A DNA stretch of 64,000 nt from the sequence record LR745208.1, one strand, 5' to 3'. The notes below the pieces were generated by a model. It saw nothing but the letters and a program-made list of their open reading frames with translations, ran no database searches and was not told the DNA's origin. Positions 5,964-64,000 of this stretch are shown here, piece by piece. A program made the position numbers and the translations under genes. Position 1 is the first letter of the stretch. Each line of letters starts with the position of its first letter.

Positions 5964-6386
5964 ATGAATGTCAAACAAGTAATCGTGATCCGTAAGGACA
6001 TCAAGATGAGGCGAGGGAAGGAGATTGCTCAGGGGAGCCATGGCAGCATGGCCTGGATGTCCGAAGTGATCCGAAACCACACGAGAGATCATCAGGACTC
6101 CTGTGTGGACTACTTGAGTAATGGGTACCAGCCAATCGACCTGACCCCGGAACAAAACGAGTGGCTCATCAACGGGCTGTTCACTAAGATTGTGACTCAG
6201 GTGGATTCAGAGGCAGAACTCATGTCCGTCTTCCAAGCCGCCACGGATGCAGGTCTCACAGTGCATTTGATCACCGATGCTGGTCTGACCGAGTTTAATG
6301 GGGTGCCTACCCGCACCTGTCTGGCAATTGGTCCCAACAAGTCTGAGGAAATCGACAAGATCACCGGGCACCTGAAGTTGTATTGA
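5964..6386 (+). CDS. pth2: peptidyl-tRNA hydrolase, Pth2 family
   Basis: KQVIVIRKD..GKEIAQGSH, KIV, DAGLTE, LAIGP..IDKITGHLKL. Confidence 0.92.
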   Translation: MNVKQVIVIRKDIKMRRGKEIAQGSHGSMAWMSEVIRNHTRDHQDSCVDYLSNGYQPIDLTPEQNEWLINGLFTKIVTQVDSEAELMSVFQAATDAGLTVHLITDAGLTEFNGVPTRTCLAIGPNKSEEIDKITGHLKLY

Positions 6387-6389
6387 CCA

Positions 6390-6695
6390 ATGTCCAACGT
6401 CATCAAGATAGCAGAATTCCAAACTCGTAAGGACCACCGCAATCGACGGGATAGGGCGCGGTGGGCCCACAAAAAGGCTTCCCTGAGGCCCTTGGAGCCA
6501 CCAGATCTGCCCGATACGAACCGGTGTCAGGCTTGGCACCAGGGCGGGCAATGCGCCCTGGATATTGGACATTACAGGCCCAACCTGGATTTGAACCCCT
6601 GTCCTCACATTTTGGAGAATGGGACGGAATGGTTTGGTGTTGGTGATTGGGCGTCAGTTGCATACTTGACCAGTGGCATACTTGACAGGATCTAG
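6390..6695 (+). CDS. hypothetical protein
   Basis: ORF in operon. Confidence 0.55.
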   Translation: MSNVIKIAEFQTRKDHRNRRDRARWAHKKASLRPLEPPDLPDTNRCQAWHQGGQCALDIGHYRPNLDLNPCPHILENGTEWFGVGDWASVAYLTSGILDRI

Positions 6696-6817
6696 ACCGT
6701 GCTTATCATGGGGGCCATGCACCACTAACTGCCGTACTGTCGTGGCCCCCCTCTAGCATTGGTCTGCCCAATTTCATCTCAAGTGAAGGTCAGTCGATGT
6801 AATCAAGGAACAAGGTC

Positions 6818-7222
6818 ATGAATCCAATCAAGTCACGGTTTCTCAAGTCCCCCAGCTACCGGGCCGTCCAGCTCGCCTACGCTTTCCTGCGTGAAACCCC
6901 CTACCGTAATGTGGAGGCGGTCACCGGCCAGGACAAGATGGACAAGGCCCCTCGGGAGTATGCCCGTAGCGTCCTCGCCTTGGATGTTGCCACCTACGTG
7001 CTGTGGCTCTCCGAAGAGGGTGCGATCGACCCCAAGAACACGTCCCCAGCCTGGGGTTACCGGGCTGCGGAGGCCAAAGCTTTGAAGCCCAGCATCCTGG
7101 AATGGATGCTTCTTCCCGAGACTCCTGAGCGGGCAGAGAAGCGACTGGGCATCTACAATGCCTACATGGCCCGTAAGAAGGAAGTGGCAGCCGCCCATAT
7201 GGCAGCCAGGAAGCTGTCGTGA
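6818..7222 (+). CDS. phage hypothetical protein
   Basis: R..QLAYAFLR..PY..VE. Confidence 0.75.
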   Translation: MNPIKSRFLKSPSYRAVQLAYAFLRETPYRNVEAVTGQDKMDKAPREYARSVLALDVATYVLWLSEEGAIDPKNTSPAWGYRAAEAKALKPSILEWMLLPETPERAEKRLGIYNAYMARKKEVAAAHMAARKLS

Positions 7223-7596
7223 AGGAACGGCTGTATCTGGTGGTCCGTTCGGATTTGCCACCTGGGCTCCAGATGTCTCAGGTGGTGCATGCCATGGTGG
7301 CGTTCGACCGTGCTCATCCGGGGGTCTCGGAGGCATGGCAGGACAGCTCCAACACCATCTCAATCCTGTCTGTCCCCAATGAGGGGGCCCTCAGGAAATT
7401 GGCAGATGAGATTGATTGTTGGGGGGATGCCCCTTGGGTACCTTTCTATGAACCGGACCTGGAGGGCAGCATGACGGCTCTGGCACTAGGACCAGGGTAC
7501 ACCTCCCAGCGTATGGTGCGAGGGCTGCTCCCTGCATTGGACCCCAAGGTGGCTTACTACGCAAGTGCAGAGTTCGACACCAATCCCCATCCCTGA
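7219..7596 (+). CDS. second, divergent Pth2-like protein
   Basis: LYLVVRSDL..G.QMSQVVHA, FYEPDL..MTALALGP. Confidence 0.75.
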   Translation: MKERLYLVVRSDLPPGLQMSQVVHAMVAFDRAHPGVSEAWQDSSNTISILSVPNEGALRKLADEIDCWGDAPWVPFYEPDLEGSMTALALGPGYTSQRMVRGLLPALDPKVAYYASAEFDTNPHP

Positions 7597-7628
7597 TCCA
7601 GCGGTATCGGTGTGGCCGATACCCCCAA

Positions 7629-7703
7629 GCCCCATTGAGACATAGCGGCCTAATGCTCTGAGCTTTAACCTCAGGATCGCGAGTTCAAATCTCGCATGGG
7701 GCA
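7629..7703 (+). tRNA. tRNA with UUA anticodon (putative ochre suppressor, Glu-like body)
   Basis: acceptor GCCCCAT/ATGGGGC, anticodon arm CTGAG-CTTTAAC-CTCAG, T arm GCGAG-TTCAAAT-CTCGC. Confidence 0.8.
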
Positions 7704-7727
7704 CCCGCCAAAGGTGTAACTACAATC

Positions 7728-8306: not shown

Positions 8307-8521
8307 CCCCTCAGGACATCCTCAAGGTATTCGAGGATTACGAGTATGACGAGCATTGTGGGAATTGTTATGACGTCCACAACCAAGACGCCCATGGACA
8401 CTACGACTCTTGTGAGTTTGCGGACAACCGAGATGCTCTCATCCGGCTGGCAACCTTGATTGTGGAATTCGCCAGCAGCCCTTCCACGCTACGAAAAGGC
8501 CCAAAGCCGTGGCACCGATGA
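8291..8521 (+). CDS. hypothetical protein
   Basis: overlapping ORF. Confidence 0.55.
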   Translation: MRVLLTPQDILKVFEDYEYDEHCGNCYDVHNQDAHGHYDSCEFADNRDALIRLATLIVEFASSPSTLRKGPKPWHR

Positions 8522-8535
8522 CGGTACAGTGAAGT

Positions 8536-10102: not shown

Positions 10103-10113
10103 GCTCCTTGGAC

Positions 10114-10320: not shown

Positions 10321-10332
10321 GGTTGGTCTCGC

Positions 10333-10377: not shown

Positions 10378-10395
10378 AACTCAGCAAGAGGCCCA

Positions 10396-10632: not shown

Positions 10633-10638
10633 GGGCAT

Positions 10639-11053: not shown

Positions 11054-11060
11054 GGTCTAG

Positions 11061-11107
11061 CCTCACAACTCTATCGGTATGGGGCAAGGCACTTTTTAGA
11101 GAAATCG
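11061..11107 (-). promoter_or_regulatory. sigma28-type promoter cassette (back-to-back with 11118)
   Basis: motif copy. Confidence 0.8.
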
Positions 11108-11117
11108 TGATGCAGTC

Positions 11118-11163
11118 GGAATTTCCTAAAAGTCATCCCTCCCGTACCGATAGGGTTGTGAGG
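11118..11163 (+). promoter_or_regulatory. sigma28-type promoter cassette
   Basis: motif copy; heads 11164. Confidence 0.8.
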
Positions 11164-14325: not shown

Positions 14326-14565
14326 ATGGACGCCATCGTTTGGATCTCCAACCGCAACCATCCCACACAGACCACCTGCAAGGTCCTCCGAACAACCCCG
14401 ACCACGATCATCGTGGACATGGTCTATCCGCACACGACAACCAACCTCAAGTTCCGGCGCTCGGACGGCAACATGACCGGGGGCAAGGTGTCCTTCTGGC
14501 TGGACGCGGAGTCCCTGAAGCAGATCAACCGAGAGATCCTTGCCACCCACACAGGGAACTGCTAG
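14326..14565 (+). CDS. hypothetical protein
   Basis: ATG after cassette. Confidence 0.75.
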   Translation: MDAIVWISNRNHPTQTTCKVLRTTPTTIIVDMVYPHTTTNLKFRRSDGNMTGGKVSFWLDAESLKQINREILATHTGNC

Positions 14566-15269
14566 TCCCAGTCGAGCATGCAGCCAAGATGGGTTGCATG
14601 CTCTTCAATGCTGTCCGCCATATCCTCAGCGGTCCTAGCCTGCTGCCCAGCGTCCTCTTCCATGACAGGACACCATGGGGCATTGAAGGACGTAGTGGGG
14701 ATACCTCGTGGGGTTCCTACCATAATTTTCTCAACGGGGCCAACCCCTGCCAGGGTCCTCGTGTAGTGGAGCCCATCGGGGCTTGGCTTGACCGGCTTCC
14801 CAAGGATTTCGGGTACATGGGCCGCACATATGACGGGTGCCCCACCAGCCAGGACAAGCTTCTCAACCCCATGGGAGACCTCACTGTATTGTCCAGGCTG
14901 GCGATAGACACGGCTCAGGAGGCTCTTGATGGCACCCCTTCCTTCGGCGCTACCATTGGACCCTGCTAGACCTCCCTTGACACCGAACCGGGTTTTCTTG
15001 CATAGCTTGAAGGCAACAGGCGTTTCCCCATCGAAGTAAATTGACCATACATCAAACTCATTCAACCCTTGGGGGGAGGAAATGATCAGCCCCAATTGCC
15101 TGTAGGTAACTTCATACATTGCCCACACTGCATCCCTGTACTGGTCGTAGTCCCCATGCCCTATCTCAGTCCATTGCCCCATTGCTTCCTTGAGAAGGGG
15201 GAGGAGGTGGGGCCGAAGAGCCGGATTCTCGTGGGCAAGTCGGACCAGTTTGGATCGAAGGGTCACCAT
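14562..15269 (-). CDS. protein with TLRSKLVRLAH leader
   Basis: shared N-terminal motif. Confidence 0.8.
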   Translation of the reverse strand: MVTLRSKLVRLAHENPALRPHLLPLLKEAMGQWTEIGHGDYDQYRDAVWAMYEVTYRQLGLIISSPQGLNEFDVWSIYFDGETPVAFKLCKKTRFGVKGGLAGSNGSAEGRGAIKSLLSRVYRQPGQYSEVSHGVEKLVLAGGAPVICAAHVPEILGKPVKPSPDGLHYTRTLAGVGPVEKIMVGTPRGIPTTSFNAPWCPVMEEDAGQQARTAEDMADSIEEHATHLGCMLDWD

Positions 15270-19464: not shown

Positions 19465-20316
19465 TTAGTCGATCACTTCAACGTGGGTGATCTTCACTTT
19501 GTGGGGATCGAACACGGCCACTTCGGGGACACCACTCACGAGGTCTGACCCGTAGTAGATGACCGAATCATAGCCCCGGCTTTTGGCCCTTTTGGCCTGA
19601 GCCTTGCTGGATGTGATGAGGGTATTGAAGACGGTAGCCACAACCGTATAGACCTTGGGGCGGTAGGCCGATGAGTCCAGGCCCACCTCATCCAAGGTGT
19701 CGTAGAGGTAGCCGGGAGCCCCAGTCGGTGCCCCACCAAACATGTCCAGTGGGGACTCCCCACTCCCAAGGGGCTTTACCTTGCTACCAATGATGTACCC
19801 GGCAACGTCATTGATAGAGTTTGGGTCTACTCCCAAGAACTTCTCAAATCCCATTGTGTCGAGGGTCCCTTGACCTGGAGTAGGATTGTCGTTCCAGAAG
19901 CCTGTGGCCCGAGGATACGTCTCCCATGCGTCAACACCCCCTTTGTAAAGGGCCTCCAGCATCCCACCGGCATTGCGGTTCTGGCTCTTGAGATCATCAA
20001 TGATTGAGGGGTCGAACCCAATGTTGCGGTTGGCCTCTGCGTACTTCTCAGCAACGTGCTTGTAGGGAGTTAGGAAGATTCCCCGGCCGTAAAACTTGTT
20101 GACCAGTTCGTCCCGGCCACGGTTCATGTCAAAGGTCTTGAAGAAAGCCGTGGTGCCATGGTAGAGGGTCGTGGGTTTCCCCTCAGGGAGCCCCTCAAGG
20201 TCATAGTTGGATAGGTTGAGAGTCTTGGCTCCCTGGAGGAGATGCCGGAAGGCAACCTTGATGGGACTGGCCTGAGGGCTCATTAGGTGTCCAACAGGGC
20301 CATTTTCGTGAGCCAT
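19465..20316 (-). CDS. ADP-ribosyltransferase-like protein with KVAFRHL leader
   Basis: LYHGT..FD..GRGIFLT..AEKYA, GYDSV, EVAVFDP. Confidence 0.6.
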   Translation of the reverse strand: MAHENGPVGHLMSPQASPIKVAFRHLLQGAKTLNLSNYDLEGLPEGKPTTLYHGTTAFFKTFDMNRGRDELVNKFYGRGIFLTPYKHVAEKYAEANRNIGFDPSIIDDLKSQNRNAGGMLEALYKGGVDAWETYPRATGFWNDNPTPGQGTLDTMGFEKFLGVDPNSINDVAGYIIGSKVKPLGSGESPLDMFGGAPTGAPGYLYDTLDEVGLDSSAYRPKVYTVVATVFNTLITSSKAQAKRAKSRGYDSVIYYGSDLVSGVPEVAVFDPHKVKITHVEVID

Positions 20317-20732
20317 CCAAAGACTTCCCGCTTTGACAGTAGGGCCAGTTCCTTGCGGGTCTTGAGATCAAAAGCTACAAACTGGGCTGCATTCTGCTTC
20401 CCAGTCGTAGGCAGGGCTGCCACGGGTTGCCCTGGTACCCGAAGGATCCATTGACCCTCTAGTTTCTCCCATTTTGCCTGATTGTCCAGGATCGTCTGGT
20501 GCCTCTGGTTCTCTTCCGTACCTGGAGTCTGGAGGTTGTTGTGGTACTGGTCCCGTAGGGCCACCTCCCGTTGCTCACGTCGCAATGCAGATGGCATCCA
20601 TTTGGCAATGGCCTCTTCATCCACGTCCCTCTTTTTGGGGCCACCAGCCGCTTCCTTCAATAGCGGAAGCAATTGCCCACGCAACTCGGGATTGGCATGT
20701 GCCAGACGAATGAGCTTGGAGCGAAGGGTCAT
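20283..20732 (-). CDS. protein with TLRSKLIRLAH leader
   Basis: shared N-terminal motif. Confidence 0.8.
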   Translation of the reverse strand: MTLRSKLIRLAHANPELRGQLLPLLKEAAGGPKKRDVDEEAIAKWMPSALRREQREVALRDQYHNNLQTPGTEENQRHQTILDNQAKWEKLEGQWILRVPGQPVAALPTTGKQNAAQFVAFDLKTRKELALLSKREVFGWLTKMALLDT

Positions 20733-24128: not shown

Positions 24129-24695
24129 CGGGGTTTTCTTCCCGGACGCTGAAACCTCAGCGTTGGAGCAGGACCTGTTTGCCGACATGGCACCATCCCA
24201 CACAACAAGACCTTCCCGACCCGGGGCTTCACCCTATCAGGGTCAGCCGAACAGGGGATCCTTGAACGGTTCAGGGGCCAGAAGGTATCGCCCCAACTCC
24301 TCTATGCCAAGAACCAATGCTTCCGAGAGGAGCCCGTCCTTGAGGGGTTCAAGTGGCTTCGTGAGTTCACCAAGATGGAGCAGTTCGTGTTCTGCTACCA
24401 ACGGGATGCCCATGACCGCTTCGACATGCTCGTAGAGAATGCCACTGCGTTCCTTCAAGCCCACAACATTGAATGGCGTGTTCGGGATGTCACCCACGAG
24501 GACTCCGGATACCACCACCACAAGGTTGACATTGAAGTCCTGACCCAAACCTACGGGTGGCTCGAAACCCATTCCTGTACCTACTACGCCGATGAACAGA
24601 CCAGCCGGTTCAACATCAAGGGCAACCAACACACTCTGTCCAACACCGCCATTGCGTCCCCAAGAATCCTGGTCCCTTTTCTGGAACGGTTGTAA
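24103..24695 (+). pseudogene. seryl-tRNA-synthetase-like catalytic core, frameshifted near 24190
   Basis: frame of 24375 extends upstream through GSAEQGI, CFREE, REFTKMEQF; then KVDIE, ETHSC, HTLSNTAIASPR. Confidence 0.7.
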
Positions 24696-26541: not shown

Positions 26542-27027
26542 ATGAACCAAAAGAAACTCAACTGCTGGGAGTTCAAGGACTGTGGGCGGAACCGGTCAAG
26601 AGGGCAACAACCCAAACAGGACTTCAAGTGTGGGACCTGTGGAAAAGTATGATCTGACTTCGCTTGCAATAAACGGAAATACTGCTCCCGGAAATGCACC
26701 AATCAAGCCGCTAGAACAGACAGACCCACCTGTCAACAGTGTGGGAAGTCATGTCGTCTTGGACGCAATCGGTTCTGCTCAAAATCCTGTGCAGCCATCT
26801 TCCAGGTGCGACCACCAGCTATGTCTTGGAGTGACTTCTATCGAAAAGCCCAGGCCGCAAATCCAGATCCACAACCTTGTGCCTGCGGGTCCCCAGGCAA
26901 ACACCGGCATCACACAGACTACACTAAACCCGAAGTCGTGGTGTGGTTGTGCGCCCCCTGTCATCTCAAGCACCACCACATTGGAGCCATTAGAGGACAA
27001 CGATTTCGCCCAGACCGCCCGCTTTAA
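26542..27027 (+). pseudogene. zinc-finger/HNH-like gene with in-frame TGA at 26650
   Basis: NCWE start, CxxC and YCSxxC repeats, HH.DY..P..V.WLC..CH..HH. Confidence 0.6.
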
Positions 27028-27487
27028 GTATGCCCCAAAAGCATCTGCCCATGACAGGTTGGCCTACTTGACATGTACCGATAGTTGTCCAGCCCACGAC
27101 ACCGTGGTGCCAGCCAAGGAGGCTAAGGATCGGGCCCCCAACTGCCCCCTGTGCAACCAGCCCCGTGAGGTCTACCAACACCCCACCGTCAAGCCGTATG
27201 GACTCGCCATCTACCACGCCAAGTTGTTGTCCTTGCCCCCACACACCAACCCCATTGCCATTGTCCCCTTCTGTGGAACTGGCATTGAAGCCAAGGCACT
27301 CCTGGATGTTGGGTTCAGGGTCATCGCCATTGATATTGATCCCCGTCACGTTGCCATGACCCAGTACAGGCTAGGTGGGGTGGGGGTAACTGTTGTAGCC
27401 GTTGGGGATGCCCCTCCAGCCACCACCACCACCACCGAAGTCCCCGCCACTGACACCACATCTTTTGAAGACCTACTGGGACTCTAA
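26990..27487 (+). pseudogene. C-terminal fragment of a DNA methylase
   Basis: RFKYAPKAS, HPTVKP, PFCGTG, IAIDID. Confidence 0.65.
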
Positions 27488-27490
27488 CAC

Positions 27491-29038
27491 ATGACCAACA
27501 CCAACCTGACACCCCCCTCCGCCGCCCCAACCAAATACACCCTTCACCACGGGGACTGCTTGGATGTCCTCAAGTCCCTACCAGCCAATTCCGTGGACGC
27601 CATCGTTACGGATCCCCCGGCAGGGATCAACTTCATGGGCAAGGATTGGGATAAGGACAAGGGTGGGCGGGACAAGTGGGTTGCTTGGATGACCGAGATA
27701 TCTCGTGAATGCATCCGCGTCATCAAGCCCGGTGGCCATGCCCTCGTGTGGGCAATTGGTCGCACATCTCATTGGACCGGCTGGGCCTGGGAGGATGCTG
27801 GCTGGGAAGTACGCGAAAAAATTACGCATTTGAATGGGCAGGGATTTCCGAAATCGTTGGATGTCAGCAAGGCGTTGGACAAACAGGCCGGAGCCGAGAG
27901 GGAAGTGGTTGGGTCGAAGGTGGGGCAACCAGGATACTCTGTGGCTCCTGGAAAAGGGCGCAACACCCTCAACTCGGCGAACGATGGCAGCCTCAACAAT
28001 TCTGACGCCGAATGTCAGATCACAGCCCCCTCCACCGACGCCGCTAAGAAGTGGGACGGTTGGGGGACGGCACTGAAACCTTCTAGTGAAGACTGGTGGA
28101 TGTTCCGTAAGCCCCTTGAAGGCACCGTAGCAGCCAATGTATTGGCCCATGGAACCGGGGCGCTCAATATCGATGGGTGTAGAATTGGATGTGAGTCTCG
28201 CCCTATCAACAACTACTCAAGTGAGGGGGCTCAAGGCTGTATGTCCCATGGTGAGGGTAAGGGTCACTCAGGTAAGGAGTACACAACCACGACAGTGTCC
28301 CAGGGCAGGTGGCCCGCAAACGCCGTCCTCAGCCACAACGAGGATTGCGTCGAAGTAGGCACCAGGAAGGTCAAGACCGGTACTGCCACCTTCAAGAATA
28401 CAGATGCCGGGACCGTGCTGGACTCCTACAGTGGGGGGCTGAAACGCCAGGACCACGGTGAGTATGGCCACGCAGACCCCGATGGCACCGAAACCGTACC
28501 CGCCTGGGATTGCACCCCCGATTGCCCCGTACGGATGTTGGACGAACAGAGCCTTGCTGGAGGCATGCACAGTGCTGGAGCCGCCCGAGACAAAACAGTA
28601 ACCTCAACCTATGAAGCATCCTCCTATGACCTGTCTGGACCCAGACCCATGGGGAGGCTAGGGGACACAGGAGGAGCCAGTAGATTCTTCTACTGCGCCA
28701 AAGCCTCCAAAGGTGACCGGGGCGAGGGTAACAATCACCCCACCGTAAAATCACAATCTCTTATGGTTTGGCTTTGCAGGCTAATCTGCCCACCCGGTGG
28801 GACCATCCTGGATCCCTTCCTGGGCAGTGGTACCACCGGTATCGCCGCCCTACTTGAGGGGTTCCGGTTCATTGGCATCGAGAAGGAGCTACCCTACTTC
28901 GAGATCGCTAAGGGACGAATCGAAAACTACAACCAACCAAAGGCTGCCCCCAAGGCGGCAACTAAGGTGGAGGGGGCAACTGAGGGTAAGAACCCCACCA
29001 CACCCGATACAGGCTCCATCCTGGACATGTTCGGGTGA
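27491..29038 (+). CDS. DNA N6-adenine/N4-cytosine methyltransferase (beta class)
   Basis: VTDPP, HPTVKS, LDPFLGSGTT, IGIEKE. Confidence 0.92.
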   Translation: MTNTNLTPPSAAPTKYTLHHGDCLDVLKSLPANSVDAIVTDPPAGINFMGKDWDKDKGGRDKWVAWMTEISRECIRVIKPGGHALVWAIGRTSHWTGWAWEDAGWEVREKITHLNGQGFPKSLDVSKALDKQAGAEREVVGSKVGQPGYSVAPGKGRNTLNSANDGSLNNSDAECQITAPSTDAAKKWDGWGTALKPSSEDWWMFRKPLEGTVAANVLAHGTGALNIDGCRIGCESRPINNYSSEGAQGCMSHGEGKGHSGKEYTTTTVSQGRWPANAVLSHNEDCVEVGTRKVKTGTATFKNTDAGTVLDSYSGGLKRQDHGEYGHADPDGTETVPAWDCTPDCPVRMLDEQSLAGGMHSAGAARDKTVTSTYEASSYDLSGPRPMGRLGDTGGASRFFYCAKASKGDRGEGNNHPTVKSQSLMVWLCRLICPPGGTILDPFLGSGTTGIAALLEGFRFIGIEKELPYFEIAKGRIENYNQPKAAPKAATKVEGATEGKNPTTPDTGSILDMFG

Positions 29039-30550: not shown

Positions 30551-30934
30551 TGTCAAGTGAATCAGTGCTGTCAAGTGAAATCGTACGTCGATTTTTCTGT
30601 TGACATCATCCCATACGATTGCCCTTGACATGCCCCGCACCCCATGCCCGCAAGGGGCCGGACCCCCCATGGTGCCCCTACCCCTGTCAAGCCAATTCGT
30701 CTGTCAAGAGAAATCGACTGGTACGAATTTGGTGCTTGACATGCCACCAACTATTAGGAGTTGCCGAATGGTTGGTTCCCGGACCCGGCCGTTGGCCCAC
30801 AGGGTCAGGTGCCTGTCAAGAGAAATCGCCCACAGAAGGGGCATCCCCTGGGGGAACCTTGTCAAGGGAAATCACCTAGCTCCTCCCGGATCAACGAAGG
30901 CTTGGATCTTGGGACTTGTTGATTTGGCTTGACA
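30551..30934. repeat. array of 10 CGATTTNNCTTGACA-like sites, both orientations
   Basis: copies at 30551, 30569, 30589, 30616, 30685, 30702, 30724, 30814, 30860, 30920. Confidence 0.85.
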
Positions 30935-31283
30935 GGAAGTCAATGGCCCCGAGGAGCCACAGGAGGCGTCCTACCTCTTTGGATGCCTCACTGCGTTCCC
31001 CGTTGGGGTCTTTAGGGAACTTTATAGTGATGTCAGCAACAGTGAAGCCAATGCCATTGCCGATACCATTCTGGATTTCCATGGCATGTTCAGCATAGTC
31101 GATCCCGTACTGTTCACTGAGGTCCAGGATTGCAGCCTCCCTGGCATCCCAAGCCCGTTTGATATGCTCCATCAGGTTGATGGGTGCGCCGCCAGCGGTC
31201 TTGAGCAAGGGCAACAGATGGGGCCGGAGAGCCGGGTTCTCTTGGGCTAGGCGGATCAACTTGGAGCGAAGGGTAGGGGCCAT
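30891..31283 (-). CDS. protein with TLRSKLIRLA leader
   Basis: shared N-terminal motif. Confidence 0.75.
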   Translation of the reverse strand: MAPTLRSKLIRLAQENPALRPHLLPLLKTAGGAPINLMEHIKRAWDAREAAILDLSEQYGIDYAEHAMEIQNGIGNGIGFTVADITIKFPKDPNGERSEASKEVGRLLWLLGAIDFLSSQINKSQDPSLR

Positions 31284-31429
31284 ACACCCGGTCAGGGCAT
31301 AGGCCAAGTAGGGAGCCCCGAAATTGGAACAGGCAGGTCCCCTCCCCGGGTTCCTGCCTGTTTGGCTGGGGAAGATGAGAATCGGCTCCTTGGTGGTGCC
31401 CATGGTCACATAATTACCGGTACTTGTTT

Positions 31430-31639
31430 TCATTTGGGCTCCTGGACTCCGAGCCGGGCGTTCATGAATGCCTTGATTTCTAGCCACGCCTCCGCGCTGC
31501 CCGGCTCCCCTTTTATGGTTTTGATGAGGTCCACCGATATCACCATGTTTGGGTCATTTGCGAGCATCATCACGAGCTTGCCAACAGAGGTTTCGGTCAG
31601 GAGCTTGCTGATTTTGTTGACTGCGGGGGGTTTCTTCAT
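31430..31639 (-). CDS. hypothetical protein
   Basis: ATG after cassette. Confidence 0.7.
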   Translation of the reverse strand: MKKPPAVNKISKLLTETSVGKLVMMLANDPNMVISVDLIKTIKGEPGSAEAWLEIKAFMNARLGVQEPK

Positions 31640-32268: not shown

Positions 32269-32586
32269 CTACTCATCATCCTCTTCCGAGTCATCGTCTT
32301 CCTCCGAGTCATCCTCGTCCGTGTAGGGGACATCGGGGAAGTAGAGGATCTGTCCCAAACCCATGCTGTCGGTCTGGGCACTACGCAGGCCCTCGGCCAG
32401 ATCCATCAGGTGACGGCTGTTGTCCTCCGCCCCCCAGACGAGGGCAGCCAGGAACTCTCCCAGGGTGTTGTCCATGCCCAGTTCGACCCCCAGGCAGGTC
32501 TTCCCGTACATGCCCCGTCCACTGTAGGACCGGCTGGTGAAGCCCTCAGAGTCATCGATGATCTGCTGTAGGATGTGCTTGGTCAT
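32269..32586 (-). CDS. phage hypothetical protein, acidic tail
   Basis: RSYSGRGMYG..C.G; DSMGLG.I.YFP. Confidence 0.8.
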   Translation of the reverse strand: MTKHILQQIIDDSEGFTSRSYSGRGMYGKTCLGVELGMDNTLGEFLAALVWGAEDNSRHLMDLAEGLRSAQTDSMGLGQILYFPDVPYTDEDDSEEDDDSEEDDE

Positions 32587-36068: not shown

Positions 36069-36273
36069 TTCCGTCTCTTTCCAAAGTCGCGGGTTGGTCC
36101 GACAGACCCTACCAGAACCTCAACCACACCCGTCCCCGCTGTAACCCGGTTCCAAATGTGTTTACAGGCCATGATGTCCAACAGGGCTTTAAAGGGCCCA
36201 ACCAGAGTACATGGTGTTGAGGTCCTGGTAGGACCAGTCAAGAAAAGTGCCCCAGGGGCCAAAGATTAGGAAC

Positions 36274-36408
36274 CAGTACAGTCCGGTGGGACTCGAACCC
36301 ACATCCACGGTTTACAAAGCCGCTGCTCTGCCTGCTGATCTACCTCAATGTAGGTTATCCTAGGTTCCTACACCCACTTCCACCAGCTGAGCTACTTGGA
36401 CTGTACTG
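36274..36408 (-). tRNA. tRNA-Thr(UGU)-like with 52 nt D-loop insertion
   Basis: TAGCTCAGCTGGT..AGAGC, arm GCGGC-TTTGTAA-ACCGT, T arm GTGGG-TTCGAGT-CCCAC. Confidence 0.65.
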
Positions 36409-36409
36409 A

Positions 36410-36612
36410 CTCGATGAAGAATCCCATGTGTGGCCAGGAATTGAACCCAGCTACGGTCAGTCCACACCGACCGTCCCCATCCAGGGGCTAGGGGGAATCG
36501 AACCCCTGCACATCCAACACACACATGAGACTCGGTCGCGGGCAGGGGAGCTGCACCCCTCTAGCTTCATCAGCACCCTTTCGGGCCCCAGAACTCCTGG
36601 GCGGTCCGCGTT
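36410..36612 (-). ncRNA. promoter-driven structured RNA with three T-loop-like hairpins
   Basis: GGTTCAATTCC, GGTTCGATTCC, AGGGG-TGCAGCT-CCCCT, GCCC-GAAA-GGGT. Confidence 0.6.
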
Positions 36613-36616: not shown

Positions 36617-36662
36617 TTACAAACTACTATCGGTACGGGAAGGTGACTTTTTAGGGAAATCG
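36617..36662 (-). promoter_or_regulatory. sigma28-type promoter driving the RNA cluster
   Basis: motif copy, no RBS/ATG downstream. Confidence 0.8.
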
Positions 36663-37331
36663 TCACCGACCCATCACAACAGCCCCACAGCCAACATTGG
36701 CCATACATAGGATGCCACGTACCCCTTTGCTGGAGTTGCAGGACTTGCAGGCGATCACGATGTTCTCAGCCACATTGGGGCCACCCTTCGAGATTGGGGC
36801 TACATGGTCCACCGTAGGTTTGTCCCCATAGGGCTTGAGGCAGTAGGCACACAACCCACAAGATACCTCCAGGGCCAGCTCAACCTCATCCCCTGTGAGG
36901 GTACTCTCCACCTTGGCTAGATTGGCCCGACGCTGCTGGCGGTTCACAGTGAAATGTTCTGGGTGGGATTTGTAGAACCGGGCATCCTTCGCCCGTCTCC
37001 TTTCAGGGTGCTCCTTGTTCCGGGCATTTTGACGGGCCCGCACTGCTGCCCTGTTAGCCTGATAATAAGCTGCACTCCGGACCCTATATTTTTCAGGGTC
37101 CCTGGCATCCTCCCATGCCTGAACTCGTTCTGGATTGGAGGCACGATAAGCAATAACCTGCTCCTTAACCTTCACCCCGTCCCTCACGTAGCGTGCATGC
37201 CTGAGAATGGACATACACTCTTTACACTTGTACTTGTGCCCATCTTTAGCCCGTTTGTTAAGGCCAAAATCGTCAAGGGGCTTCAGAGTCCCACATTCGG
37301 AACATACTTTTTTAGCTGCCAAGGCATCCAT
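36663..37331 (-). CDS. HNH homing-type endonuclease
   Basis: CSEC, CKEC; CAYC..TVDHV.P.SKGG.N..NIV.AC..CN..K. Confidence 0.9.
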   Translation of the reverse strand: MDALAAKKVCSECGTLKPLDDFGLNKRAKDGHKYKCKECMSILRHARYVRDGVKVKEQVIAYRASNPERVQAWEDARDPEKYRVRSAAYYQANRAAVRARQNARNKEHPERRRAKDARFYKSHPEHFTVNRQQRRANLAKVESTLTGDEVELALEVSCGLCAYCLKPYGDKPTVDHVAPISKGGPNVAENIVIACKSCNSSKGVRGILCMANVGCGAVVMGR

Positions 37332-37463
37332 GCCAATGTGTGCGCAATAGGGAGATTAGCTGCGGGCCCTAACCTGAGCCCCGCCAGGGACTTGAACCCT
37401 GACCCGAAATCAAATGCCCGGTACTGCTCCATCTCACCCTTCGAAAGTCGAATCTTCATGGTA

Positions 37464-58202: not shown

Positions 58203-58254
58203 GTTGTTTCTCTTACACCTTCAAGGGGTGGTACATGCTTCAATCCTCTCATTT

Positions 58255-58362
58255 TGGCAACTTGCCTGGGATTTGAACCCAGATCCCGGCAAGAGTTGGG
58301 GGTGGGGTCTAGAACACCTTCCAACTCTCACCATGTGCTAACCAGTCTTGCACCAACAAGTT
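58255..58362 (-). tRNA. 108 nt tRNA with 47 nt anticodon arm and encoded CCA
   Basis: AACTTGT/GCAAGTT-G-CCA, D stem GTGC/GCAC, T arm CTGGG-TTCAAAT-CCCAG. Confidence 0.75.
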
Positions 58363-58364
58363 CA

Positions 58365-59210
58365 GGCCCCTACCCGGTTCTGCCCCGGGCCTCCCACCAT
58401 TCTGGGTAATGCGACTACACACCGTTAGGCCGTACTGGGTGGCGTGGGACATAACCACTAACGCTAGCCACCATCACGATTGAGGCAGTTTGTGGACCCC
58501 GCCGGGGTATTCCCTGACACAGACCACACTCTGCCCAAACATTAACCCCGTGCAGCAATTTCCACGGGACGGGTCCAACTGCGCCTTTTGGGTGACCTTT
58601 CGCTAGCAGGTGTCTCATTGTCCACGGGAGGCCCCGCTTCATCCGTTTGAGACTCGACCCAGTCAGTGGAATGCCTCCCACGTCTACCCAGGCCACCGCT
58701 AACTCCATCCTGTGCTGCCCTCAGACTGCCCCAAGAATCTTCACTGGGACCTTGGACCAACTGTAACGACAACACAAGGCATCATTGCGGAAGTACGCGC
58801 ACTCTATTCCGCTTCCCTCTCTCCCTGCGCGCTATGCCAGGAACTAAACCCTGGCTACCTGGAGAGGAATAAGCTGTTGGTGGGTTGATCCAGGCCAATA
58901 CTGGGGCCCGGACATTTCACTTGGGGGGGCGCCCACCGGCATCCTCCTTGCGCTACATCTTTCAGCGACCGGGCGGTTGTCTCGCATACCTGCCCAGTTA
59001 TCGCTTCTGGTTCGCCATTGGAACTGCTTACCCTCCGACATCAATCTAACTTCATCGATCAATCCGACTCAATCCACACATGGGGTGCCCCGTAGGGCGT
59101 AAGTTGGGTGGGATCTAACTCGGCGGGGCTCTTGCGTTTTTCATCATTGTAGGGTTCCTCTGCGTACGTTTACTGGTGCCTTGTTGGCTGGGACTCTTCT
59201 CTGTTCCTTA
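58365..59210 (-). ncRNA. candidate large structured ncRNA (~850 nt)
   Basis: own promoter, no convincing ORF, multiple hairpins, tRNA immediately 3'. Confidence 0.65.
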
Positions 59211-59252
59211 CACACCCTATCGGCACAAGAAGACCAATTTTTAGCAAATTCG
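59205..59252 (-). promoter_or_regulatory. sigma28-type promoter driving the large ncRNA/tRNA
   Basis: CGAATTTGCTAAA-N15-GCCGATAG. Confidence 0.8.
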
Positions 59253-59259
59253 TATGACC

Positions 59260-61762: not shown

Positions 61763-61802
61763 CGTGGTCTCCTGGGTGGGTGTTCCGGCCCGCAGGGCCA
61801 GT

Positions 61803-61848
61803 TCCTTACACCCTATCGGCATGGGGGCACCAATTTTTAGAGAAATCG
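61803..61848 (-). promoter_or_regulatory. sigma28-type promoter cassette
   Basis: motif copy. Confidence 0.8.
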
Positions 61849-61967
61849 ATATGGGGTCACGTATGGTCGTGCGCTTGGGCTTCTTTTAGTTCCCTGATTC
61901 TGGCCACTTCATTGGCGGCCATGGTGGGAACATCCATCCTGGCATATGAGATGAAGTTGGGATGTCG

Positions 61968-62372
61968 TCATAGTGGATCTCCCAGGACGGTTACAGTAGC
62001 CGGAAGGGTGGTGTCCCACCTGACACCGAGGATGGCTAGGTGGTGGCAGATCGTACCAGCAACCCGGCACCACACCTTGGCTTGGTTCAGGTGATTGAGG
62101 CGGGTCTCTTCCCTACGTGCGTTGACGATTGGGTCCTCATGGTGCTCCAAGTGGTCAAAGAACTCGGCATTGCTGGCGGCTTCCTTCTGCTTGTGCATTG
62201 CCTCCCGGGCCAGTGCAATCAGGAACTCCTCATGGGACAGCATTGCTGGAGCCCGTGTCAGGCGTTCCGCTGCTTGAACGATTTCCTGGTTGGGGACAAA
62301 GGGGATCTGGAGTGTCACCACTGGTTCCTTGAAGGGAGCAAATGGATCAGGCATCTTGGGCATTCCGTTCAT
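61968..62372 (-). CDS. hypothetical protein
   Basis: ORF. Confidence 0.55.
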   Translation of the reverse strand: MNGMPKMPDPFAPFKEPVVTLQIPFVPNQEIVQAAERLTRAPAMLSHEEFLIALAREAMHKQKEAASNAEFFDHLEHHEDPIVNARREETRLNHLNQAKVWCRVAGTICHHLAILGVRWDTTLPATVTVLGDPL

Positions 62373-63219
62373 TACGCAACTCCTGCAATTCCCGTTCGTA
62401 GTTGGCCAGCATTTTTTCGTACCTCTGGATCCTCAAATTGGCAATGTCCAGGTCATCATACTGCCTTGGTAGGCAATACCGACAGGCCCCACAGGGGCCG
62501 TTCCCTGCTGCCTGCTCCTCCTCACATGCTTTGCCGGACCAGACATGGATTTCGGTTCGGGCTGCCTCAAGCTCTTGCGTGAGTCGTGCGACATCTTTGC
62601 GAAGCAGGTTTCTCTCACCCCGCGCCATTGCAAGGGATCCCTCACTCGCCTCCGCACGCCACGTCATGCTCTCAAGATTTGCAAGAAGGGATGGGATTCT
62701 CGGCAGGACCAGTACTGCATAGCTGGCCTGTTCATGTCGGTCTTTGGCCTGAAGGGCGGCATTGAGATCCTTGCGGAGTTCAGTCAAGCATTGTAGCCCA
62801 CCACACCCCGGAGTCTCATCAGATGTGTGCCCACAGCCACATGGCTCCCCGCCCATCTGTTCCTCCCGGAATGCCTTGGCGGACTCAGGACTGGGCTCAG
62901 GGATAGGATGGTGAACCTTCTCGTAGGCGTCCACCACTTCAGCAAGGATCTGTAGACGCTCGAAGGCTGGCGTGCCTGGAGGGGCCTCCCAGAGGCGTTC
63001 TACCTCATGAAGCGCCGCCGCATGCTCGGTGTCATTGGTGATGCCCTCCAGTACAGGTTCCACCTTGGACTCATGGAGCCACACCGTGACTGGTCCTACA
63101 AGCTCACGCCACTCGACCTGCACCATCTCACCCCGGAGGGCGGTCACTTTGCCAGTGTAGGTGGGTCGAGGCCAATGCTCAACATGGAACCTAACTTGGT
63201 CACCTATCTTGTGGGCCAT
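62347..63219 (-). CDS. mosaic protein with HigA-antitoxin-like segment
   Basis: AAL.EVE.LW.A.PGTP..ERL..LAEVV.AYE..H.PI..P. Confidence 0.7.
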   Translation of the reverse strand: MAHKIGDQVRFHVEHWPRPTYTGKVTALRGEMVQVEWRELVGPVTVWLHESKVEPVLEGITNDTEHAAALHEVERLWEAPPGTPAFERLQILAEVVDAYEKVHHPIPEPSPESAKAFREEQMGGEPCGCGHTSDETPGCGGLQCLTELRKDLNAALQAKDRHEQASYAVLVLPRIPSLLANLESMTWRAEASEGSLAMARGERNLLRKDVARLTQELEAARTEIHVWSGKACEEEQAAGNGPCGACRYCLPRQYDDLDIANLRIQRYEKMLANYERELQELRNERNAQDA

Positions 63220-63222
63220 GCC

Positions 63223-63471
63223 TTACTTACGCCCCGACACCCCAGAGTTGGGCCACGAATGCACCAAGCAGACCTGTTCCCAGCCCTTGCTCCTTGGGGG
63301 AGGGGCGTCACATTCGATGCAGTAGGGTTTGACCCGGCGTGACTCCGGTGGCCTATTGATGACCATACGTGTGGTGTCACGCTCTTTGGTTGCGGTTAGG
63401 GCCCTAACCTCGGTGGCAGACTCCTGGAGCAAGTCATTCAGGTCGTACCAGTCCCAACGGTCTATCACCAT
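63223..63471 (-). CDS. hypothetical protein
   Basis: ORF. Confidence 0.5.
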   Translation of the reverse strand: MVIDRWDWYDLNDLLQESATEVRALTATKERDTTRMVINRPPESRRVKPYCIECDAPPPRSKGWEQVCLVHSWPNSGVSGRK

Positions 63472-64000
63472 TCACCCCGCATGTATGCCTTCAGGTTCCA
63501 TTTGGTACCAAGAATGTGATCCGTTACAACTCCGTCCTGCATCCTGACTGTCCTTCTCTTATCCGCTTTGGATCCCGCCCCAACCTGTTGCTTACGGTCG
63601 GCTGCCCGGGTTGACGTGGCCTGGGTGTTCGCAGCCTCCCAGAGGCGTGCCCGTAGTAGGGACAGGGCAGATGCCAAGTTCTGCTTCTGGCTACGCTCGG
63701 TCTGGCATCGAACCATGAGCCCTGTAGGCAAATGTCTTACTTGTACGGCGCTATCAGTAGTGTTGACTCCTTGTCCGCCACATCCGCTCGCTCTCGTAGC
63801 TGCCCATTCAATATCCTGGGGCCGAATCACGAGTTGGGTCTCGTTCGGAGGTTCAAGGGTTGCCACCGTAATTGTGCTACTGTGGATTCTCCCATTGCTG
63901 GTCCGCTGCACCCTGTGGCCACCTGCCTCATTGGCGAAGGCATCCTTGGCGCCCTTCCCTGATACCTCTATGATGCACAGCCCTGGGGATTGCTCAATGA
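63465..64000 (-). CDS. class I peptide release factor (RF1-like), 5' end outside window
   Basis: EAGGHRVQR, GRIHSS, SGCGGQGVNTTDSAV, QTERSQ, VTDH. Confidence 0.88.
   Translation of the reverse strand, partial: IEQSPGLCIIEVSGKGAKDAFANEAGGHRVQRTSNGRIHSSTITVATLEPPNETQLVIRPQDIEWAATRASGCGGQGVNTTDSAVQVRHLPTGLMVRCQTERSQKQNLASALSLLRARLWEAANTQATSTRAADRKQQVGAGSKADKRRTVRMQDGVVTDHILGTKWNLKAYMRGEW

Follow-up and report, generated by a model that had tools for sequence, protein, structure and literature searches.

Translation-related modules and probable relics at the left end of the huge phage genome LR745208.1

The sequence LR745208.1 represents a 485-kb metagenomic huge phage, which is uncultured and carries no annotation. 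Its first 64 kb were analyzed here and are called the window. The standard genetic code fits this phage; ORF coverage under that code is 0.83-0.99 everywhere, and TAA, TAG, and TGA are all used as stops, with TAA closing 72 of the 369 long ORFs (19.5%). ARAGORN called 36 tRNAs in the genome, and the main array, with 34 further tRNAs at 142-201 kb, is distant from the window. The genes for a release factor (RF), a Pth2, a Pth2-like protein, and a seryl-tRNA synthetase (SerRS) remnant are each present in one copy in the genome, and the translation-related parts, some on each strand, span 58 kb with more than 100 unrelated genes between them (Table 1). According to the searched passages of Al-Shayeb et al. 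2020 (PMC7162821), huge phages carry tens of tRNAs, aaRS, RF1/RF2, RRF, and tmRNA; LR745208.1 is similar in being a metagenomic huge phage with 36 called tRNAs and a release factor. Those passages contain no Pth2, suppressor tRNAs, frameshift in a phage RF, or loss of domain 1 (0 matches for "hydrolase" and "suppressor").

Table 1. Translation-related and neighboring features in the window.
Feature	Position	Strand	Evidence
tRNA-Arg(CCU)	5878..5952	+	ARAGORN; Rfam tRNA 59 bits; Pth2 start 12 nt downstream
Canonical Pth2, 140 aa	5964..6386	+	Pfam PTH2 100 bits; TIGR00283 93.8 bits vs. cut-off 82
Two ORFs of unknown function between the Pth2 genes (6390-6695 and 6818-7222)	6390..7222	+	ORF calls
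Divergent protein with predicted Pth2 fold, 125 aa	7219..7596	+	Pfam PTH2 19.6 bits, below gathering score 23
9-bp hairpin GGTATCGGT/GCCGATACC	7603..7623	+	Sequence and fold; between Pth2-like stop and tRNA(UUA)
tRNA, anticodon UUA	7629..7705	+	ARAGORN; Rfam 29.5 bits vs. gathering score 29; MFE fold is a cloverleaf
SerRS remnant, truncated to the stretch from motif 2 to motif 3	24153..24695 (stop-to-stop frame)	+	TIGR00414; PDB 1ser
Structured RNA module B, tRNA-Thr(UGU)-like with ~50-nt D-loop insert	36272..36412	-	Rfam, blastn, fold
Structured RNA module A, closed by a 14-bp stem, with four hairpins of which two resemble T arms	36418..36535	-	Fold
Predicted generic phage promoter (CTAAAAAGT-N-GTACCGATA), not followed by a ribosome-binding site or an ATG	36628..36662	-	Sequence
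HNH endonuclease gene, bordering the RNA cluster on its upstream side	36663..37331	-	Pfam HNH 42.9 bits
Promoter and ~1-kb ORF-poor stretch (candidate large RNA)	58250..59258	-	Promoter scan, T-arm scan
Short RF1-like release factor, post-frameshift part	63465..64000	-	Pfam RF-1 domain 105 bits

Module 1 (5878-7705, + strand) is a compact run on one strand, composed of tRNA-Arg(CCU), Pth2, the two ORFs, the divergent Pth2-fold protein, and tRNA(UUA). A second tRNA-Arg(CCU) is a member of the main tRNA array. Homologues of the canonical Pth2 were found at 57 viral loci, with tRNAs within 4 kb at 28 of them. The two ORFs gave no match in Pfam and NCBIfam searches and have no homologue beside the RF genes of other phages; the second overlaps the start of the Pth2-like gene by 4 nt. 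In structure comparison, the AF2 model of the divergent protein (pLDDT 83) agrees with solved structures of Pth2 at probability 1.0 and TM 0.66-0.76, and the top 14 Foldseek matches in PDB are all Pth2 (14/14). By this model, the protein has a Pth2 fold. It shares the fold with archaeal/eukaryotic Pth2 (PF01981), while being about 20% identical to the solved Pth2 structures and carrying DLPPGxQ in place of the canonical DLxMGKGK. Hydrolase activity is not assured, because the Lys of the canonical GKGK stretch is missing.

The stop codon of this gene lies 33 nt before tRNA(UUA). The hairpin between them is no copy of the phage promoter, as it lacks the CTAAAAAGT box. The tRNA has the loop CUUUAAC and A73, and CCA is not encoded. 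Its acceptor, anticodon, and T arms are good, and its D arm is odd and poor. By its anticodon it reads UAA, and possibly UAG by wobble. Because the Rfam score is barely at the threshold and the D arm is poor, it may be a damaged gene.

The Pth2-like family comprises 706 proteins and includes the cluster-C mycobacteriophage Pth (Bxz1 gp154 and Myrna gp84), for which 206 Mycobacterium phage records are already annotated as peptidyl-tRNA hydrolase. A suppressor tRNA (CUA, UCA) adjoins the Pth2-like homologue at 15 of 33 other metagenomic loci versus 3 of 136 control loci, the latter being neighborhoods of RF or canonical Pth2 genes (by-locus Fisher p 5.6e-10, which is optimistic because the 33 loci include several near-duplicates: L250/L251, L264/L265, and L267/L268). 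Suppressors account for 17/59 of the tRNAs near Pth2-like genes and for 4/965 of those near RF or canonical Pth2 genes. In metagenome contigs the two members of a pair invariably share a strand, and the gap between them can be as short as 2-89 nt; UAG is the codon read by most partner tRNAs. The pair is present also in viral contigs L232-L234, and the same arrangement is seen in the cultured mycobacteriophages Bxz1 and Myrna. Among the remaining loci of the 33, 10 have an odd tRNA with a 9-nt loop and 8 have no tRNA, several of these being almost flankless. At the level of gene neighborhoods, it is shown that a stop-codon-reading tRNA and the gene of the divergent Pth2 are a conserved pair across many unrelated phages, and that the partner tRNA, by its anticodon, reads UAG, UGA, or UAA depending on the phage. 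The literature search found no paper on this constant neighborhood.

The Pth2-like enzyme may attack the 3'-terminal ester bond of its partner tRNA. In doing so it would serve either to recycle peptidyl-suppressor-tRNA dropped by the ribosome or to limit the charged fraction of that tRNA. If so, the phage could keep a stop-reading tRNA in use, neither forfeiting it nor harming phage translation.

Module 2 (63465-64122, - strand) is the RF gene, which extends beyond the window, with the shift site CTTTGAC at 64014-64008 and the ATG at 64122-64120. Frame 0 runs for 37 codons to the stop in CUU UGA C, and the RF1 homology resumes in the +1 frame. The shift site is of the prfB type, GGAGG-N3-CUU UGA C. 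CTT plus a stop is found at the same position in 76 of 80 viral loci (TGA 60, TAG 13, TAA 3), and GGAGG-like bases are upstream in at least 52 of those 76. The site is identical in L010 and present also in the distant L011. The phage RF gene is predicted to need a prfB-type +1 frameshift. Full-length RF would be made only if termination at the shift-site stop is slow, as in prfB. The shift-site stop is UGA, and therefore RF synthesis would report RF2 activity in the infected cell.

As in prfB (RF2), the shift site of the phage gene is CUU UGA C with GGAGG three bases upstream, lies early in the gene, and is conserved. In contrast to prfB, the protein is RF1-type (its best matches are RF1 and the family consensus is PPT), domain 1 is missing, the shift site lies in domain 2, and the shift-site stop in the family may be UGA, UAG, or UAA. 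With UGA at this position, an RF1-type product would be unable to sense its own level. A 2025 survey reported prfA without any programmed frameshift (PMC12421855).

The phage RF has an intact GGQ and has lost the PxT loop. Its best PDB relatives are RF1, and the 4-residue gap in the alignment falls exactly on P-x-T; the nearest relative (85% identical) keeps PPT. Without PxT, the protein probably no longer reads UAA/UAG normally. It would be either a factor for codon-independent peptide release or a decaying copy, and the deletion, which is absent from the closest relative, is equally compatible with decay. The rescue factors PrfH (RF-H) and ArfB, which act independently of codons or on specific damage, are similar in having no domain 1, a retained GGQ domain, and a codon-reading tripeptide that is altered or absent, and the PrfH alignment to members of the phage RF family spans the full length. 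Assignment to PrfH was nevertheless rejected (71 bits vs. cut-off 167; no RtcB neighbor), and domains 2 and 4 are RF1-like, not RF2-like. ArfB was also rejected (45 bits vs. cut-off 100; no ArfB-type basic tail). Elsewhere among huge phages, the gene of the short RF is usually found within tRNA islands. Among the 80 loci, tRNAs are within 10 kb in 43, tmRNA is nearby in 4, and Pth2 in 6.

Module 3 is represented by RNAs. Module A folds with an MFE of -59 kcal/mol (z -4.76; 0 of 200 shuffles folded as well) and belongs to no Rfam family. Module B (141 nt, fold z -3.54) contains an Rfam partial tRNA at 36285-36343 (- strand; 35.6 bits) with a UGU loop, and the matching acceptor and D-stem 5' halves are located about 50 nt upstream. 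There is an AA bulge in the 11-12-bp acceptor-like stem, and the 5' half of the D arm is duplicated. By blastn, module B matches phage tRNA-Thr genes, and ARAGORN made no call. The "CUA-apex tRNA" proposed earlier corresponds to a hairpin (loop of 12 nt) within the Thr-like element's insert, and neither ARAGORN nor Rfam calls this hairpin as a tRNA. T-loop hairpins outside called tRNAs number 5 in the window against 0.28 expected, and 10 in the genome against 2.15 in shuffles. The T-loop hairpins of the preliminary description are confirmed by these counts, with the qualification that the stretch holding the T-arm at 37401 is unstructured (z -0.4). The candidate large RNA (59210->58250, - strand) is an ORF-poor stretch behind a promoter and ends in a T-arm minihelix followed by UUGCCA, but its identity as a large ncRNA was not borne out; it has no Rfam match, its fold z is -1.85, and its longest ORF (97 aa) has no Pfam match. 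No relatives of the structured RNAs were found.

Sigma28-like promoters precede both ORF-free RNA stretches (~36628-36662 and 59218-59258), but they are not specific to them. The motif TAAA-N15-RCCGATA has 54 copies in the genome, about 29 of them in the window, before ordinary genes, and appears to be the general sigma28-like promoter of the phage; none of the 54 stands before the tRNA/Pth2 cluster. From these features, Module 3 reads as promoter-driven, ORF-free, strongly folded RNAs made from tRNA pieces at 36272-36535, to which 58250-59210 perhaps also belongs.

The SerRS frame aligns to residues 267-393 of Thermus thermophilus SerRS (1ser) with E 2e-10, and scores 30 bits against the cut-off of 302 with TIGR00414, covering model positions 286-399 of 418. 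The sole standard start of the frame is the ATG at 24375, and both motif 1 and the N-terminal arm are missing. The piece is, by its reading frame, a remnant.

Most of the translation parts listed in the preliminary description do exist in this phage, as separate modules: tRNA(UUA), the two Pth2 proteins, the SerRS-like core, the PxT-less RF, and the tRNA with the D-loop insert. The HigA-like segment could not be recovered; none of 134 ORFs has an HTH match, and the motif scan was empty. It is reasonably likely that the left end of the genome holds a number of translation-related modules, each independent, along with some relics, and not one co-regulated system. Two items look undescribed: the Pth-like gene found in company with stop-codon-reading tRNAs, and a short RF apparently made only through a ribosomal frameshift.

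That the parts are mostly debris, a decaying translation island leaving a mutated tRNA that reads UAA by chance, a reader-less RF, the stump of a SerRS, and a tRNA-Thr that an insertion disrupted beside the HNH endonuclease gene, is considered unlikely. The low score and poor D arm of tRNA(UUA), the close RF relative without the PxT deletion, the startless SerRS piece, the duplicated D-arm half flanking the module B insert next to the HNH gene, and the real tRNA set elsewhere in the genome all agree with decay. However, the pairing of Pth2-like genes and suppressors recurs in at least 12 divergent lineages with three anticodons, the RF retains GGQ and an intact shift site with an SD-like element, and modules A and B follow a promoter that is intact and have folds well beyond those of shuffles.

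A single coordinated early system, decoying or repairing the damage by host abortive-infection toxins that target tRNAs or ribosomes (anticodon nucleases, HigB/RelE), is improbable. tRNA-like RNAs without decoding function do exist in the window; Pth can reverse the N-acetylation that GNAT toxins place on aminoacyl-tRNA, and ribosomes damaged by ribotoxins are rescued by PrfH-type factors (PMC6514570 for part of this). A 436-kb phage (L020) has two tRNA(UCA), the Pth2-like gene, and the short RF all within 10 kb of one another. Part of the linkage suggested earlier does hold, in that the Pth2-like gene and its stop-reading tRNA are paired beyond chance, but in LR745208.1 the parts are spread out and the promoter is the general one of the phage. 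PrfH was rejected as the identity of the RF, the search for a HigA-like protein was negative, the window showed no RNA-repair genes, and the sequence holds nothing bearing on decoys, host anticodon nucleases, or HigB/RelE. A decoy model also does not predict that the Pth2-like gene should be paired specifically with a tRNA that reads stop codons.

Equally doubtful is a code-change module, acting in early or residual stop recoding or as a switch activating genes with in-frame stops: suppressor tRNA, aaRS, and RF form the named module of Jade phages (Borges et al., bioRxiv 10.1101/2021.08.26.457843) and the partner tRNAs of the Pth2-like family mostly read UAG, the codon most often recoded, but the standard code fits throughout, TAA terminates many long ORFs, and the read-through control suggested earlier has no target, stops interrupting none of the genes and the long ORFs with a single in-frame stop being ordinary coupled genes with stop-NNN-ATG junctions. 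The annotations of Bxz1 and Myrna, both of which have the pair, use the standard code. LR745208.1 has the same part types as the module of Borges et al. (suppressor tRNA, release factor, and aaRS-related gene), whereas its three parts are non-adjacent, at 17-56 kb from each other, its genes are not recoded, and its aaRS is a startless stump. The conserved tRNA partner here is a hydrolase-like protein, and a hydrolase is outside that module.

The Pth2-like gene near the start of the window lies directly upstream of a tRNA gene with the anticodon UUA, and a canonical Pth2 gene starts 12 nt past tRNA-Arg(CCU) in the same region. The UUA tRNA and the two Pth2 genes named in the preliminary description were both confirmed. 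The canonical Pth2 is clear by profile, while the second is weak by sequence and was recognized through its predicted fold. Most of its relatives retrieved with the family profile have a precomputed PF01981 match. The AF2 model built on five homologues (pLDDT 83, pTM 0.77) was compared with PDB by Foldseek, and the top matches were all Pth2 (2zv3, 3erj, 1q7s, 1wn2, and 1xty; probability 1.0, TM 0.66-0.76). The model thus predicts the Pth2 alpha/beta fold for this product. Among residues relevant to catalysis, D12, H24, and D80 are invariant in the five-sequence alignment, and the canonical GKGK stretch has lost its Lys. The tRNA(UUA) has a 7-bp acceptor stem (GCCCCAT/ATGGGGC), a 7-nt anticodon loop (CUUUAAC) with U33 and a purine at 37, and a T arm (GCGAG-TTCAAAT-CTCGC) that matches the TTCRANY loop. 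These three arms are regular, but the D arm is poor, with a D stem of 2-4 pairs and 8 unpaired bases after the acceptor.

Features of the window related to translation or to structured RNA
Feature	Position	Strand	Evidence
Pth2 (PF01981/TIGR00283)	5964-6386	+	Pfam 100.3 vs 23; TIGR00283 93.8 vs 82; unambiguous
Pth2-like	7219-7596	+	Pfam PF01981 19.6, below the gathering score 23; no NCBIfam match
Suppressor tRNA, anticodon UUA	7629-7705		ARAGORN; Rfam RF00005 29.5 bits vs gathering threshold 29 (narrow pass)
Module B	36272-36412	-	z -3.54; two thirds of tRNA-Thr(UGU); Rfam 35.6 bits; blastn matches to phage tRNA-Thr genes
Module A	36418-36535	-	14-bp stem closes four hairpins, of which two resemble T arms; z -4.76
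Candidate large ncRNA	59210->58250	-	Longest ORF <=97 aa; z -1.85 (weak); ends in a T-arm minihelix, then UUGCCA
RF ORF in the window	63465-63911	-	Part of the gene only; ATG at 64122 opens 37 codons

The proximity of a Pth2-like gene to a stop-reading tRNA recurs in other phages. A 436-kb phage (L020) carries a short release factor (RF) gene, a Pth2-like homologue, and two tRNA(UCA) genes, all inside 10 kb. This co-location prompted the search that gave the main result, the pair of a Pth2-like gene and a suppressor tRNA. In three viral contigs, the Pth2-like homologues are followed by tRNA(UCA) twice (L232) or by tRNA(CUA) (L233 and L234); with the UUA tRNA here, the gene is paired with tRNAs for any of the three stop codons. 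A profile of five sequences retrieved 33 further Pth2-like loci from metagenomes, and ARAGORN was run on their 3-kb flanks; each locus scan in this study covered its best 34-80 loci, with flanks of 3-10 kb. At 15 of the 33 loci, the gene has a suppressor tRNA on its own strand (CUA 13, UCA 2), and the shortest gaps to the Pth2-like gene are 2, 20, 56, and 89 nt. Suppressors account for 17 of the 59 tRNAs near Pth2-like genes, compared with 4 of the 965 tRNAs close to genes for RF or canonical Pth2. Counted by locus, the numbers are 15/33 and 3/136 (Fisher p 5.6e-10, near-duplicate loci included); because some Pth2-like loci are near-duplicates, independent lineages are closer to a dozen. At ten further loci there is an unusual tRNA, called "Ile(aat)" by ARAGORN, whose 9-nt loop AGUAAUG(A/C)C is conserved, and eight have no tRNA, several of these being almost without flank.

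The Pth2-like family comprises 706 members by profile search, among them the product annotated as "peptidyl tRNA hydrolase" in 206 cluster-C mycobacteriophages. In Bxz1, a "tRNA-OTHER" gene, which is tRNA(CUA) by ARAGORN, comes 306 nt after gp154, and in Myrna, a tRNA(CUA) annotated as tRNA-Ser comes 130 nt after gp84. No published link between a Pth2-like gene and a suppressor tRNA was found in the literature search. The jumbo phage XacN1 has been reported to encode two CUA suppressors in a standard-code genome, without a reported target (PMC5852040).

Two other kinds of RNA were observed around these genes. The tRNA with the 9-nt loop takes the place of the suppressor tRNA next to the Pth2-like gene in the ten loci (L238, L240-L242, L254, L256, L258, L260, L263, and L266); its acceptor stems are varied, its loop often spells UAAUGA, and it is also present at the loci L019 and L021/L022. 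In the mycobacteriophage-like contigs L233 (4355-4664) and L234 (4352-4656), small tRNA-like elements, each an acceptor stem and a T arm ending in ...CCTCTCCCACCA, lie in the spacer that separates tRNA(CUA) from the Pth2-like gene. They resemble the T-arm minihelices of the window.

The window is 100% identical to the first 64 kb of the record LR745208.1, an "uncultured phage" genome of 485,034 bp, metagenomic and without annotation. The GC content is ~0.56, and the gene strand changes from plus to minus near 30 kb in the window. The rest of the genome contains 34 further tRNA genes, all at 141.8-201.0 kb, so the tRNAs of the window are outliers away from the main arrays. Control of stop read-through had been suggested as one role of the listed parts taken together. 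Standard-code ORFs of >=100 codons cover 0.83-0.99 of each 25-kb block of the whole genome. When each stop was read as sense in turn, ORF coverage singled out no codon, and TAA, TAG, and TGA all terminate long ORFs (19.5%, 34%, and 47%, respectively, of 369 non-overlapping long ORFs). As potential read-through targets, 136 pairs of long ORFs split by a single in-frame stop were collected; the inspected ones are, with few exceptions, places where coupled genes meet as stop-NNN-ATG, and they show no excess of TAA. Coverage, stop usage, and junction type together indicate that tRNA(UUA) serves no recoded genome and has no visible read-through target.

Same-frame joins of this kind (TAGgccATG, TAAcacATG, and TGAgccATG; e.g., 27485-27493, 263838, 319964, and 305864) are common genome-wide, which suggests widespread termination-reinitiation coupling. 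ARAGORN also called a tRNA with a four-base anticodon "ttta" at genome position 142,332-142,406 (32332-32406 of the genome segment L002). By eye, its loop CUUUUAA is compatible with a tRNA-Lys(UUU) whose anticodon stem contains a bulge, and Lys(UUU) is called nowhere else in the genome.

The release factor without PxT was verified at the end of the window, with a gene that extends past the window. The RF pieces were searched separately throughout and not joined across the stop; for Pfam scans of the window, called ORFs were concatenated with X spacers for batching. The post-shift piece matches RF1 best (Thermotoga maritima RF1 129 bits, RF2 89 bits, PrfH 45 bits). GGQ is intact (ASGCGGQGVN), and a 4-residue gap falls exactly at the P-x-T tripeptide (HRVQRT----SNGRIHSS versus HRVQRVPVTESGGRIHTS). 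Domain 1, on the RF3/L11 side, is absent; the product of ~213 aa begins at RF1 position ~113. The score for the prfA equivalog TIGR00019 is 175 against a cut-off of 423, and the scores are far under the cut-offs of prfA, prfB, PrfH, and ArfB alike.

The 37 codons of frame 0 (METIIVEIRAAEGGSDAKDLVNVYLGIYTKRGLRRGL) are terminated by a TGA inside cggAGGggtCTTTGACc. This site has the composition of a prfB-type frameshift site, CUU followed by a stop and C, with a Shine-Dalgarno (SD)-like element ~3 nt upstream. Frame 0 reads METIIVEIRAAEGG...RRGL, and the RF1 alignment resumes in the +1 frame. A word-indexed search gave 312 short (170-230 aa) relatives, most of which keep PPT in the alignment, including the nearest one (85% identity). 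In many relatives, the called gene opens out of frame at "...GGVFDL", the product of GGnGGnGTCTTTGAC read in +1. The same shift site was found in the DNA of the nearest relative and of one distant member.

A scan of IMG/VR gave 374 RF loci, and the best 80, mostly contigs of 50-620 kb and including this phage, were examined. CTT plus a stop is present at the equivalent codon in 76 of these best 80, and frame 0 encodes the N-terminal part. TGA serves as the stop in 60, TAG in 13, and TAA in 3; among the other four, one gene is uninterrupted and three are unresolved. A GGAGG-like element lies <=15 nt upstream of the shift site in at least 52 of these 76 loci. The PxT loop is PPT in most and PPN in 11; four phages, this one included, have a shortened loop. 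Of the best 80 loci, 43 have tRNAs (up to 37) no more than 10 kb from the RF gene, four have a tmRNA, and six have a Pth2 homologue. The RF loci with TAG at the shift site are L015, L016, L019, L023, L024, L036, L051, L059, L061, L063, L064, L070, and L077, and those with TAA are L026, L060, and L091. The tmRNA lies 0.5-1 kb upstream of the short RF in the loci L013 (9112-9470) and L090 (8591-8950), and 9 kb upstream in L065 (577-931).

No published description of this short-RF phage family was found in the literature search. According to a 2025 survey of 12,753 genomes, programmed frameshifting is known in prfB and not in prfA (PMC12421855). An origin of the RF as a bacterial gene was considered; the bacterial scan with one genome per species returned ordinary full-length prfA of <=47% identity, bar one MAG contig. 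On a JGI contig of 264 kb (L011), a frameshift-bearing short RF is located among bacterial-looking genes (Ser/Thr kinase, MMPL, and ECF sigma), and the short-RF family may therefore not be phage-only. Assignment to the PrfH/RtcB system is contradicted by the PrfH score (TIGR03072, 71 vs 167), and neither RtcB nor any other Pfam partner adjoins the gene here or in the RF homologue loci L010 and L011. ArfB is dismissed, as NF006718 scores 45 vs 100 with only 35 residues aligned, and domains 2 and 4 are present.

Structured RNAs were also part of the preliminary description. The promoter at 36628-36662 on the minus strand has neither an RBS nor an ATG behind it, and an HNH endonuclease gene is directly upstream of the RNA modules. 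The tRNA with a D-loop insert proved to be module B, a partial tRNA-Thr(UGU) whose matching acceptor and D-stem 5' strands are ~50 nt upstream; the D-arm 5' half is duplicated, and its imperfect second copy flanks the insert. The proposed tRNA with a CUA apex is no tRNA; it is a 12-nt hairpin loop within this insert. T-arm-like hairpins outside called tRNAs exceed the shuffles (10 in the genome vs 2.15), and five are within the window. The one at 37401 was rejected as a mini-RNA; it is in an unstructured stretch (z -0.4) and inside a small ORF that has an ordinary promoter and RBS ahead of it. For the large ncRNA, the ORF-poor stretch with its terminal minihelix was recovered, but its folding score is weak and Rfam at permissive thresholds gave nothing for this 1-kb stretch or for modules A and B. 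The stretch was rejected as a tmRNA, since ARAGORN called none there and the sole Rfam tmRNA match lies elsewhere in the window (36492-36506, 15 nt, 13 bits). Matches to mir-3718, mascRNA, mir-750, and Plastid-ycf2 are far under gathering scores and were judged to be chance; mir-3718 matched spuriously on both strands of 11061-11163, where back-to-back divergent phage promoters form a near-palindrome. When the tRNA/Pth2 cluster and the two RNA regions were compared by blastn with 50,697 phage records, only the genome itself and short matches to tRNA-Thr came back.

The sigma28-like promoter motif is real and conspicuous, but not specific to the RNAs. The motif CGATTTCnCTAAAAAGT-N11-GTRCCGATAGGGTATTGAGG, located 14-36 nt upstream of the ATG, matches the sigma28 (FliA)-type consensus TAAA-N15-GCCGATAA. 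TAAA-N14-16-RCCGATA has 54 matches in the genome (49 with N15), 48 of them in the first 160 kb, versus <=1 in shuffles. It precedes two ORF-free stretches, at ~36.65 kb and ~59.25 kb, and also ~29 ordinary genes of the window, always on the strand of the gene. The motif scan of the window found no such promoter upstream of the tRNA/Pth2 cluster. A candidate -10 box there is one arm of a hairpin at 7603-7623 and was rejected because it has no -35 box.

The SerRS-like core shows true homology to residues 267-393 of T. thermophilus SerRS (E 2e-10), but it is partial. It corresponds only to the part from motif 2 to motif 3 (~225-400), with neither a full class II core nor the N-terminal tRNA-binding arm. 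TIGR00414 scores 30 vs 302, and Thr-x-Glu is replaced by PTRG. There is no start codon ahead of the ATG at 24375, and TAA and then TGA separate the piece from the upstream MazG-like ORF. The HigA-like segment was not recovered by three kinds of search: HTH_3/HTH_31 domains of the HigA/XRE type were absent in Pfam from the 114 called ORFs of the window and from 20 alternative ORFs (134 in total), and a regex motif scan was empty.

The inventory of the preliminary description is thus largely right, and two or three of its parts do belong together. These parts recur in tRNA islands across phages. The window does not present a single coordinated system, and it is neutral on decoy or anti-toxin roles. 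The reading we regard as probable combines separate modules with a genuine partnership between the Pth2-like gene and its tRNA, and with a programmed frameshift that is likewise genuine. Any specific chemistry for the Pth2-like protein or the RF is much less certain. The Pth2-like enzyme may act on the 3'-ester of its partner tRNA, and would either recycle peptidyl forms dropped after weak stop-codon pairing or set the charged fraction of the tRNA. Synthesis of the RF would require slow termination at the stop of the shift site. With UAG at this site, an RF1-type product could regulate itself, which it could not with UGA; a UGA site would have RF synthesis report host RF2 and not the product itself. 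The PxT-less RF of this phage may catalyze codon-independent peptide release or may be a decaying copy.

We consider it rather unlikely that large phages use the Pth2-fold protein and the adjoining stop-reading tRNA as a device of two parts to control the outcome at stop codons. With a frameshift-gated RF1-like factor that senses host release-factor activity, such a device would constitute a phage-run termination regime in standard-code phages. It might be a switchable suppressor, with the hydrolase setting its acylation state, or a tRNA-guided activity for peptide release. In code-change modules, a suppressor tRNA, an aminoacyl-tRNA synthetase (aaRS), and an RF adjoin one another upstream of genes with recoded in-frame stops; here, in contrast, 17-56 kb separate the parts, and no gene is recoded.

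Translation genes of huge phages, including tRNAs, aaRS, RF1/RF2, RRF, and tmRNA, are already described in PMC7162821; their roles are largely obscure, and suppressor tRNAs of standard-code jumbo phages such as XacN1 (PMC5852040) are so far unexplained. The general phenomenon is known, while the Pth2-like/suppressor pairing and the RF frameshift regularities appear to be new. A Pth2-family gene and a stop-reading tRNA are co-inherited in phages that differ widely. Cultured Bxz1-type mycobacteriophages, which grow on Mycobacterium smegmatis mc2 155, carry the pair, so genetics and biochemistry are feasible now. Short RF1-type phage factors appear to use the frameshift trick of prfB, whereas the 2025 survey concluded that RF1 genes do not (PMC12421855); this bears on how a frameshift site could evolve in, or be transferred to, another domain of another paralogue. 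The two regularities are relevant to annotation as well, where short RF genes are routinely called truncated with wrong-frame starts.

Several other genes of the window were recognized. At the genome start, 93-1535 (plus strand) encodes a 480-aa TnpB-like protein with OrfB_IS605 and a Cas12f1-like TNB domain; its homologues are near the RF genes of two other phage loci, L081 and L082. The product of 19465-20316 (minus strand), 283 aa long, contains an ART-PolyVal ADP-ribosyltransferase domain (42.6 bits), and the neighbouring genes are on the opposite strand. At 26582-29038 (plus strand), TAA-CAC-ATG divides two in-frame ORFs, the first with a SAM-binding-like motif at its end and the second encoding an N6/N4 DNA methylase (91 bits). 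The motif (T)LRSKL(I/V)RLA..NP.LR..LLPLLK is common to 14562-15269, 20283-20732, and 30891-31487, all on the minus strand. It is N-terminal in two of these ORFs and internal in the third, and they look like a small paralogous family.
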